A DNA stretch of 64,000 nucleotides from Antechinus flavipes (taxonomy: Eukaryota), in assembly GCF_016432865.1 (NCBI RefSeq), contig NC_067402.1, forward strand, positions 219,418,001 to 219,482,000, in the 5' to 3' direction. The notes under the pieces are model-generated. The model was not told the DNA's origin, made no database searches, and saw only the letters and a list, made by a program, of their open reading frames with translations. Positions within the stretch are counted from its first letter, which is position 1. The number at the start of each line of letters is the position of its first letter. This document shows, piece by piece, positions 3,857 through 6,800 of the stretch. The position numbers were made by a program, and so were the translations under genes.

Positions 3857-6800
3857 CTGGAAAAAGAAAAGGAAATTATTATTAAGAAGTATGTCTATGA
3901 ACATGTGAAGGGGTGAGGAACAAGCTATGAAAAAAGGATCCCACTTATCCTTCATTCTCCCCACAGATGGGCCATTTTTGCAATTCACTCAACTTCAACC
4001 CCTATCCCTCTAAATTTTGCTAGGAAATCACCAAGGAAAGAGGAGGCACAGACTCCTCTTTTTTAGCAAATGTCCAAGGAGCCTGACTCTCCATTGGGGT
4101 GAGGGGAAGCCTCTATTCTGGGATTGTGAGGTACAAAGAACAGGTTAGTTTCTTCCCTTCTCCCTAGCTTACCGACAGCAAGCTCCGTCCATCTTCATCT
4201 AGTGGAGGCACCACCTTACTGAAATCTTGCCGTGCCCACTTGGGGAAGCTGGGTTTATAATCAGGCATGGAGGTCACTCCTGGCCAAGCTACCTCATCTG
4301 GTGTCCCCAGTGTCCGAAAGATCCTGAATAGCTGGTCAATTTCAGAGTCTCCAGGAAATAAAGCCCTACGGGTAATCTGGAAAGTAGAAGAGGGGGACAG
4401 GATTGACGTAGGTGAACCCCTCCCAGCACATAAAGAGTAGAAGTTCCCACAGGCAGTGAAAGGTCAATGGGACCCCATGACTCCCCCCAGGGCCCTTCAC
4501 GGGGTCAGTCACACATGAGCCTGAGACAATAAAGCCCCTTTATTATCTCCATGCCTCCTCCTCCCCTCCCCCAACCATGGCTTTTCAGATCCCCCTAGGC
4601 TGGGGTGGAGGGGTTGGGGTGGGGGTGAGTGGGGGCCACTGATGTGCAGCAAGGGGATCCCAAGCCACTCACGGGGTGTGGGGTGGGCATTGAAGTCATC
4701 CCCCCTCCTTGTGATGCAGCCACTTCTAGATAGGAGTACAGAGGGCAGGGACTGTGTCTTCCACTTCTTCTGTTATCCCCCACAGCACCTAGCACAGTGC
4801 TGGGCACACAGTAGGTGCTTAATAAATCCTTGTTGATTGATTGAAACAGGAATATGGGCAAGTGTAAGGTAATGCATGAAGGGACAAATAACCCATACCA
4901 TATTTTTAAGATGATGGGTTCTGAGCCCTTAGCTCAGTTTCCTCATCTATAAAATGAGGGGGTGGACTAGATGACCTTCAAGGTCCAGTAAAGGGCCCTG
5001 GGAATAAACTCTCAATAAATATTAGTTGCTGATTTGAAGACACTGTGTGGCTTTGGCCAAAAAGACCTACAAAAGGCCAGGAGCTATCAGGGAAGGTATT
5101 GGTTTAAAAAAAAAAAAAAAAAAAGGTGGGGGGAAACATTAGTCCTCCCTTGCCCAAAATCATGGTACATCTGTACCTGGAATACTGGGTGCAGTTCAGG
5201 TCTTTGTATCTCAAGAAAGATTATCATTGAAACTGGAGAAGATTCAGAAGGATAACTTAAAAAATCAAAGGGATGGAGGGGTGCCTCGCACATGATTTAA
5301 AATATTAAGAATTTTCTGTTTGAAAAGTCAAAAGTTAAGCATATGCTCAAAGTTTATAAAATAAAAAATAGTATATAAAGCTCCCTGAATTCTGTTCTAT
5401 CCAGGAGAGATATTCTAGAAAGTTAATGAAAACCTAAAATTTCAGTATAGGAAGTACTACTTTTTTCAGAGCAGGTAATAAACTCTTGGTGTGCACGAAA
5501 TAGCTATAATAGTTTATAAGTTAATGGTGACAGATCTACAGCAGTCTATTAAGTGAGGATTTTATGGGAAGACTATCCTACTATTTGAAATTTGAAGGTC
5601 CTTATCAGGGAAGAAAATCATACCCAACCACCCCATCCCACTTCCATACTTCCCTTGCTGTCAGAAACTAATGAAGGGCTGGATGGAGCATAGGTCTTAA
5701 CCAGTGTGGCAACTCTTTTAAGTGTTCTCATGCCATGAGATAGAAGGGGTTATGTCTGTGTTTGATGGAGTGAAAAGGTGGGGATTGGTGAGGGTTAGGG
5801 TCAGGGTCTATAACATACCATCTCAGCAAAGATACAACCCAGGCTCCATATATCTACAGCTGTTGAGTAGTATTTACAACCCAAGAGGATTTCTGGTGCT
5901 CTATACCACAGGGTTACCACCTGAATAAAATGGAAAGATGGGAAATCAGTAGAGAAATCCAACTCTTAACACCAGTCTCTAAAACTCCATTCTTTAGGGC
6001 AGCTTTTCCTCTTTCCCAACATGTTGCTCTCACTGATTCCCTTTTTCCCCCAACAATTTCTTCCAACCCCAATTAGTCTAACACATGGTCCTTAGCTTTG
6101 CATTTTATTTTACATGTCTTCTATATGCTTCTAGACAAGTATTCCAGCTTTGTGTCTAATTAATCAGATTCTACAGTGAATGGGATTAAATTCTGAGATC
6201 TTCCTGGAGTGACAGAAGTTCTTTCCCCTTATTAAGGTTGTCAATTATATATTCTATTATAATAAACAAAACAATTTATATGCCAATTTATGGCCTACCA
6301 ATATTTTCCATTTGATAAAAGAAATCTCCAAATCCCCCAAACCATTTCTATTCCTTTCCAATAACCCATGCTTATGACTTCAACATTATTCTTGATTTCT
6401 TACTCTACTAATCTCTTACCCCACATATTTAATCAGTTACCAAATCTTCTTACTTCCAAACCTACAGTATTTCTTCCATCTCTTTATTTAGCCACCATTC
6501 TAGTTTGGGCCTCCATTTTGCCAAGATTACTGAACTAGCTTCTTCCTTGATCTCTCTGCCTCAAGTCCTTTTTCATTCAAATTTATCTCCTATACAATTG
6601 CCAAAATGATAGTCCTAAAGTATAAATCTTATTATTGTCACTTTAGAGGCAGCTAGTACCACAGTGGATAAAATGCGAGGTCCTATAGTCAGCAAGACCC
6701 AAATTTAAATCTGTTCTCCAGACTTTTACTAGCTATGGAAGTCTAGGCAAGTCTTTTAACCTTTGTCTCAGTTTCCTCAAATGTAAAATTGGGATAATAG

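Follow-up and report, generated by a model that had tools for sequence, protein, structure and literature searches.

Comparative analysis of the CDK2 locus in Antechinus flavipes identified a segment of intron 5 that is well supported, by its alignment, as the marsupial orthologue of the placental CDK2L (Cdk2-beta, p39) cassette exon. Judged from the sequence comparisons, the exon, about 70 nt of the upstream intron and the whole downstream intron are under strong and largely nucleotide-level constraint, as would be expected of a regulated alternative exon. Two changes specific to the antechinus lineage were found, an extra base in the exon and a new acceptor AG just upstream of it. The best explanation, held with slightly less than even confidence, is that these changes form a compensated pair that would give an in-frame 350-aa isoform. 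The weights attached to this and to all other readings are rough priors and do not result from a computation.

CDK2 is encoded on the minus strand of the window, which is the whole stretch of 64,000 nucleotides that was analysed. Seven constitutive coding exons, intact over all 894 nt, splice to an intact 298-aa kinase. The alternative segment sits in intron 5, between the exon ending ...CIFAEM and exon 6, and can be read in two versions with a common donor and different acceptors, A and B (slashes in splice sites mark the exon boundary):

9450-9335, 8508-8431, 8258-8138 and 7564-7394, minus strand: CDK2 constitutive coding exons 1-4, which splice to an intact frame
5819-5920, minus strand: constitutive exon 5, ending ...CIFAEM, donor ATG/gtatgt, last exon base 5819
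4673-4817, minus strand: version A of the alternative exon, 145 nt, acceptor ttaag/CAC, homologous to the placental acceptor
4673-4828, minus strand: version B of the alternative exon, 156 nt, acceptor acaag/GAT, open, 52 codons
4671-4672, minus strand: donor GT of the alternative exon, CCC/GTGAGT, last exon base 4673, in full CCC/GTGAGTGGCTTG
4173-4376, minus strand: constitutive exon 6, first base 4376, starting V/ITRRALF
3856-3752, minus strand: constitutive exon 7, the last of the seven constitutive coding exons

From acceptor A the exon encodes 14 residues followed by an in-frame TAA at 4775-4773, and the spliced product stops at codon 211. This TAA is located 100 nt before the 3' end of the exon, with a further exon junction downstream. 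Acceptor B lies 11 nt upstream of acceptor A, and version B spliced into the seven constitutive exons yields a product of 350 aa. With acceptor A, but not with acceptor B, a premature stop thus falls more than 50-55 nt ahead of the next exon junction. The 144-nt, 48-residue open frame of CDK2L is not obtained from the homologous acceptor, which gives 145 nt with a TAA, and the alternative exon is open only as 156 nt from acceptor B. A first-pass annotation of the window had described both versions, the 145-nt form with its TAA at 4775-4773 and the open 156-nt form with 52 aa and a 350-aa CDK2. Its coordinates and translations, including the end of exon 5 at 5819, the start of exon 6 at 4376 and the donor at 4673/4672, hold base for base.

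Several features of the neighbourhood were recorded. PMEL is positioned head to head with CDK2 (window 10.5-18 kb), with a large PKD/repeat exon ORF at 15679-16749, and in a dingo record the strand opposite to CDK2 has an 890-aa PMEL model that spans the entire locus. An open 182-aa frame at 45537-46085 (plus strand) resembles the last exon of PYM1 (WIBG) and fits the expected gene order PYM1-DGKA-PMEL-CDK2. The N runs at 13246-13376 (131 bases, PMEL region) and 56874-57037 (164 bases) are both distant from the alternative exon.

The sequence of the mouse cassette, Cdk2 exon 6 (144 nt, 48 aa), is printed in PMC12539205. The 48-aa mouse insert given by the first-pass annotation is exact, as it equals both the translated exon 6 of that study and the insert of the mouse CDK2 protein. 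The antechinus locus was compared with the CDK2 loci of mouse, cow and other bovids, two bats, dingo, guinea pig, naked mole-rat and degu and with a further placental contig. Nucleotide identity of the alternative exon to mouse and seven other placental loci was 88-91% (87.7-89.0% over the 155-nt exon region). Against mouse exon 6 it was approximately 87%, with a single length difference of 1 nt. Constitutive exons 5 and 6 show 82-86% identity to placentals, which is below the alternative exon. The earlier proposal that this region aligns to the rodent exon is borne out for rodents and other placentals alike, both by the 88-91% identity and by the donor and acceptor A, which are the same as in the placental loci. 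The 12 intron bases GTGAGTGGCTTG that follow the donor are invariant in all nine aligned sequences.

A 346-aa long isoform is annotated in rodents, bovids, deer, bats, toothed whales, dingo, lemurs and New World monkeys, and papers cited in PMC12539205 report that the long isoform is expressed as a protein. Protein searches with the insert region returned placental clusters only among the matches listed, and no separate cluster of an insert-bearing marsupial protein. The 350-aa antechinus form could be hidden in a hamster-represented cluster of 113 members, 15 of which were listed; it would be 91% identical to the cluster representative. Searches with the 52-aa insert and with the 88-aa genomic ORF detected only placental genomic ORFs and unrelated repeat proteins, and exact look-ups of two of the window's ORFs gave no entry. 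Metagenome scans with a marsupial-specific pattern and with an invariant pattern gave no match, and a literature search on Cdk2 exonisation and marsupial CDK2 isoforms returned nothing.

The insert is nearly invariant in placentals other than anthropoid primates. Anthropoids have two common changes, GRHS to GRQS and GGG to GWG, as well as private ones; one anthropoid sequence (P0004) and gibbon carry a C to G change, and gibbon also has a deletion of one residue. This suggests a relaxed constraint on the insert along the line to humans, which are reported not to express the long form.

By part, the identity of the alternative exon to placentals is 83-89% in the 5' portion and 90-91% in the 3' portion. 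At third codon positions the seven constitutive exons are 58-63% identical between antechinus and placentals. Third-position differences number 3 of 48 in the alternative exon (94% identical), whereas the constitutive exons have 119 of 297 (Fisher p = 1e-6). Differences of the alternative exon from the placental consensus are distributed 7:6:3 over the placental codon positions; there is no third-position excess and, if anything, third positions are conserved best. A coding explanation of the conservation was rejected for either strand, as the differences lack codon periodicity. Conservation also continues beyond the exon on both sides:

4818-4889, minus strand: conserved upstream intron flank, 72 nt, 72-81% identity to placentals, ending abruptly at about 4890
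4695-4736, minus strand: block matching the placental consensus, 42 nt, 41 positions identical in nine of nine sequences
4377-4672, minus strand: whole downstream intron, 296 nt, 69-76% identity to placentals, with near-invariant blocks and C-rich and G-rich tracts

The only deviation in the block at 4695-4736 is found in degu, at 4700. The stretch from 4889 to 4377 is the only long conserved intronic block in CDK2: the other approximately 920 nt of intron 5 cannot be aligned, and no conserved block in the other introns is longer than about 60 nt. Three short blocks of 40-60 nt in introns 1 and 3 (8862-8923, 7870-7918 and 8695-8739), with 79-88% identity to placentals, account for the only other intronic conservation in the gene. 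Flanking introns are conserved and silent sites constrained, as in regulated cassette exons. Silent-site conservation that shows no codon periodicity, together with the conserved flanks, argues that the constraint acts largely at the nucleotide level. The first-pass annotation had placed the origin of the exon before the marsupial-placental split. The multi-species comparison agrees with this date, since 4889-4377 exceeds the coding exons at silent sites, and on its strength an origin of the constrained element before the split is well supported. In the roughly 160 million years since then the exon itself has changed very little.

Within the downstream intron, a C-rich tract at about 4640-4600 is followed by a G-rich tract at about 4575-4550 (minus strand); the two tracts are found in placentals too and can form a hairpin with each other. 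Rfam searches of this intron returned only sub-threshold miRNA-like matches at 4547-4635 (mir-150, 26 bits versus a gathering score of 55). In a consensus RNA fold of exon and intron from eight species the covariation term was positive (unfavourable) and variation was low, and no structure was supported. The two tracts could be G-run or poly-C splicing elements instead.

The acceptor region of the antechinus exon differs from the placental arrangement. In all eight placental loci acceptor A is the first AG after an AG-free zone of 53-108 nt. In antechinus such a zone ends at acceptor B, and acceptor A follows 9 nt further on. The features that set the antechinus locus apart are:

4831-4920, minus strand: AG-free zone of 90 nt, with a conserved CTTAC branch-point candidate (A at 4865) and the pyrimidine tract cccatattcctgtttc
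4829-4830, minus strand: AG of acceptor B, AT in all eight placental loci, lineage-specific, two substitutions
4773-4781, minus strand: indel site GGGGGATAA, one base longer than the placental GGGGAACA and including the TAA at 4775-4773

Gaps from AG to AG of at least 90 nt make up only 0.3% of those on the minus strand of the window. The description of acceptor B as the first AG past the pyrimidine tract was accurate, as it comes after this 90-nt stretch. Its AG is derived, as eight of eight placentals lack it. As a rule, splicing takes the first AG that follows the branch point. With the A at 4865 in CTTAC as branch point, acceptor B would be expected to be chosen or, at the minimum, to compete. 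Its AG would be skipped if the branch point is located in tcaatcaac, just upstream of it. Both acceptors are weak AAG sites.

In the proposed sequence of events, one base would have been inserted at GGGGGATAA (4781-4773) in the antechinus lineage, and a new AG would have arisen at 4830-4829, 11 nt upstream of the old acceptor and at the point where the AG-free zone ends. Splicing at this first AG would add 11 nt and the insertion 1 nt, and the resulting 12 extra nucleotides would keep the CDK2 frame. The predicted insert would consist of 18 new residues, which lack the Cys/His-rich stretch, followed by 34 residues homologous to the placental insert. A transcript spliced at the old acceptor would stop at codon 211 and is a predicted target of nonsense-mediated decay. 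A compensated pair is favoured because either change alone breaks the frame of the long isoform (+11 with acceptor B, +1 with acceptor A), while both together add 12 nt. Splicing of the exon in marsupials, use of acceptor B and a genuine insertion are inferences here. Some points speak against compensation. On a rough estimate, an upstream AG, given that any arises, would be open and frame-compatible by chance in 15-30% of cases. In addition, the new frame as predicted drops the conserved Cys/His-rich half of the insert.

If the insertion is real and nothing compensates for it, acceptor A (mainly) or both acceptors would be used, the segment would be a poison exon or one that has lost its coding role, and the constraint would reflect splicing regulation. 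We consider this unlikely, though deserving of serious attention. It agrees with the position of the TAA 100 nt before the end of the exon and ahead of a downstream junction, with differences that lack codon periodicity and with conservation of flanking introns that is typical of regulated exons. The insert peptide is also dispensable, as mice without exon 6 are viable and fertile (PMC12539205). However, the acceptor in use in placentals is the first AG after the AG-free zone, which in antechinus is acceptor B, and an uncompensated insertion makes the register of 11 + 1 = 12 a coincidence.

The nature of the extra base was analysed in its sequence context, which reads GTGGGGAACACAG in eight of eight placentals versus GTGGGGGATAACAG in the window. 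Two equally short alignments of GGGGGATAACAG to the placental GGGGAACACAG exist, one with an extra G and two transversions and one with an extra A and two transitions; MAFFT selects the latter. Copies of a dispersed repeat in the window, described below, read GGATACA at this site and are compatible with either base. The first-pass annotation had located the extra base in a run of five G. The presence of one additional base relative to placentals stands, but the G5 run is only one of two equal placements, as an extra A fits too. On the alignments, a distinction of G4 versus G5 is too narrow, since the indel may equally fall outside the G run.

A different origin of the extra base would be an error of assembly, in which case the true exon has 144 nt, is open from acceptor A and represents a plain marsupial CDK2L orthologue. 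The assembly was generated from PacBio CLR reads with wtdbg2 and one round of Pilon (PMC9290055), and with such data a residual 1-nt indel is possible. A G5 run is present at the site, and the removal of one base restores a 48-codon open frame that is approximately 77% identical to the placental insert (manual count). Even so, an error seems quite improbable. The 894 nt of constitutive CDK2 exons in the same window are intact. The site carries two substitutions as well, and the alignment with two transitions puts the extra base in AA and not in the G run. Moreover, with a 144-nt exon acceptor B would shift the frame by 11 nt, and the locus would still be unlike the placental arrangement.

Least probable is a block conserved apart from CDK2 splicing in marsupials, such as an intronic enhancer of CDK2 or PMEL, with the exon confined to placentals: conservation that lacks a coding signature and covers the whole downstream intron, and protein searches with no marsupial isoform among the matches listed, would fit, but the block sets in about 70 nt upstream of the acceptor and its other end coincides exactly with exon 6, a donor GTGAGT, an acceptor AG and an AG-free zone of 90 nt have been retained, and extra insert changes are seen in anthropoids, whose presumed ancestor is on the line to humans, reportedly without expression of the long form.

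Similarity searches within the window also provided information on the origin of the exon. Its acceptor and 5' part probably derive from an old interspersed repeat, which we take to be an antisense L2 3' end. The segment concerned is:

4741-4846, minus strand: dispersed-repeat-like segment that takes in the acceptor region and two thirds of the exon from its 5' end

With blastn and nhmmer, the repeat core was detected in five further, diverged copies (53161-53214, 40690-40791, 10251-10299, 53575-53643 and 37098-37152). The core has the form ATTTATTAAGCACCTACT.TGTGCCAGGCACTGTGCTAAG.GCTG..GGATACA... and the copies jointly cover 4846-4741, close to the limits of about 4725-4845 that had been claimed for the repeat beforehand. 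Sensitive searches were required, as an exact-pattern search that allowed the core 3 mismatches at most recovered the exon and no other copy. The continuation GACACAGTCCCTGCCCTC presumably fits the consensus of an antisense L2 3' end and not that of MIR, and the AG of acceptor A falls where we take the repeat consensus to have TTGAG. A MIR-like core (...TTTTATAGATGAGGAAACTGAGC...) is present at 4925-5000 (minus strand), just upstream of the conserved block. It is missing from the aligned placental introns and is therefore regarded as a separate repeat that is not part of the repeat underlying the exon.

These results bear on the role of the long CDK2 isoform. A mouse study from 2025 reported that one CDK2 isoform, whichever of the two, is enough for mitosis and meiosis, and it could not explain the conservation of the long isoform in mammals (PMC12539205). 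Constraint at the nucleotide level fits the result that either isoform suffices. An exon and downstream intron that are older than the marsupial-placental split, with silent sites more constrained than those of the coding exons of the kinase, point to a splicing-regulatory role at the RNA level. It is possible, if rather doubtful as a whole, that the CDK2L cassette is a therian-wide module approximately 160 million years old that is constrained mainly as RNA and whose frame was broken and then repaired in antechinus. If true, in-frame inclusion would matter and the conserved Cys/His-rich half of the insert would not. New in the present comparison are the lack of the acceptor B AG in eight of eight placental loci and an indel that, as aligned, is equally an extra A. 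The frame-shifted marsupial provides a natural test of peptide versus frame versus RNA, which is made cheap by 106 published A. flavipes RNA-seq samples.

The antechinus exon was compared with known systems. Like exons derived from ancient L2 or MIR repeats, it has its acceptor and 5' part in an antisense repeat-like segment, but in age and conservation it goes far beyond typical repeat-derived exons, and it is constrained at all codon positions. The genes of SR proteins contain highly conserved poison cassette exons that are coupled to nonsense-mediated decay. As in these, exon and flanking introns are conserved as nucleotides, and the stop reached from acceptor A lies more than 55 nt before a junction. 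Unlike them, the placental CDK2 exon is in frame and translated, and the antechinus stop would be a lineage-specific by-product of a 1-nt indel. The two antechinus changes resemble compensatory frameshift pairs in that +11 and +1 occur near each other, sum to a multiple of three and rewrite only the stretch between them. They differ in that one of them is a shift of a splice site and not an indel in the mRNA, and selection for the pair is conjectural. The closest relative is placental CDK2L (mouse Cdk2 exon 6) itself. In antechinus the exon is one base longer, which closes the placental frame with a stop, 11 nt upstream lies an additional AG that no examined placental has, and the open frame would replace the Cys/His-rich first half of the insert. 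Both exons share the same intron, donor, acceptor A and conserved flanking introns, and the last 34 residues of the insert are still recognisable in antechinus.
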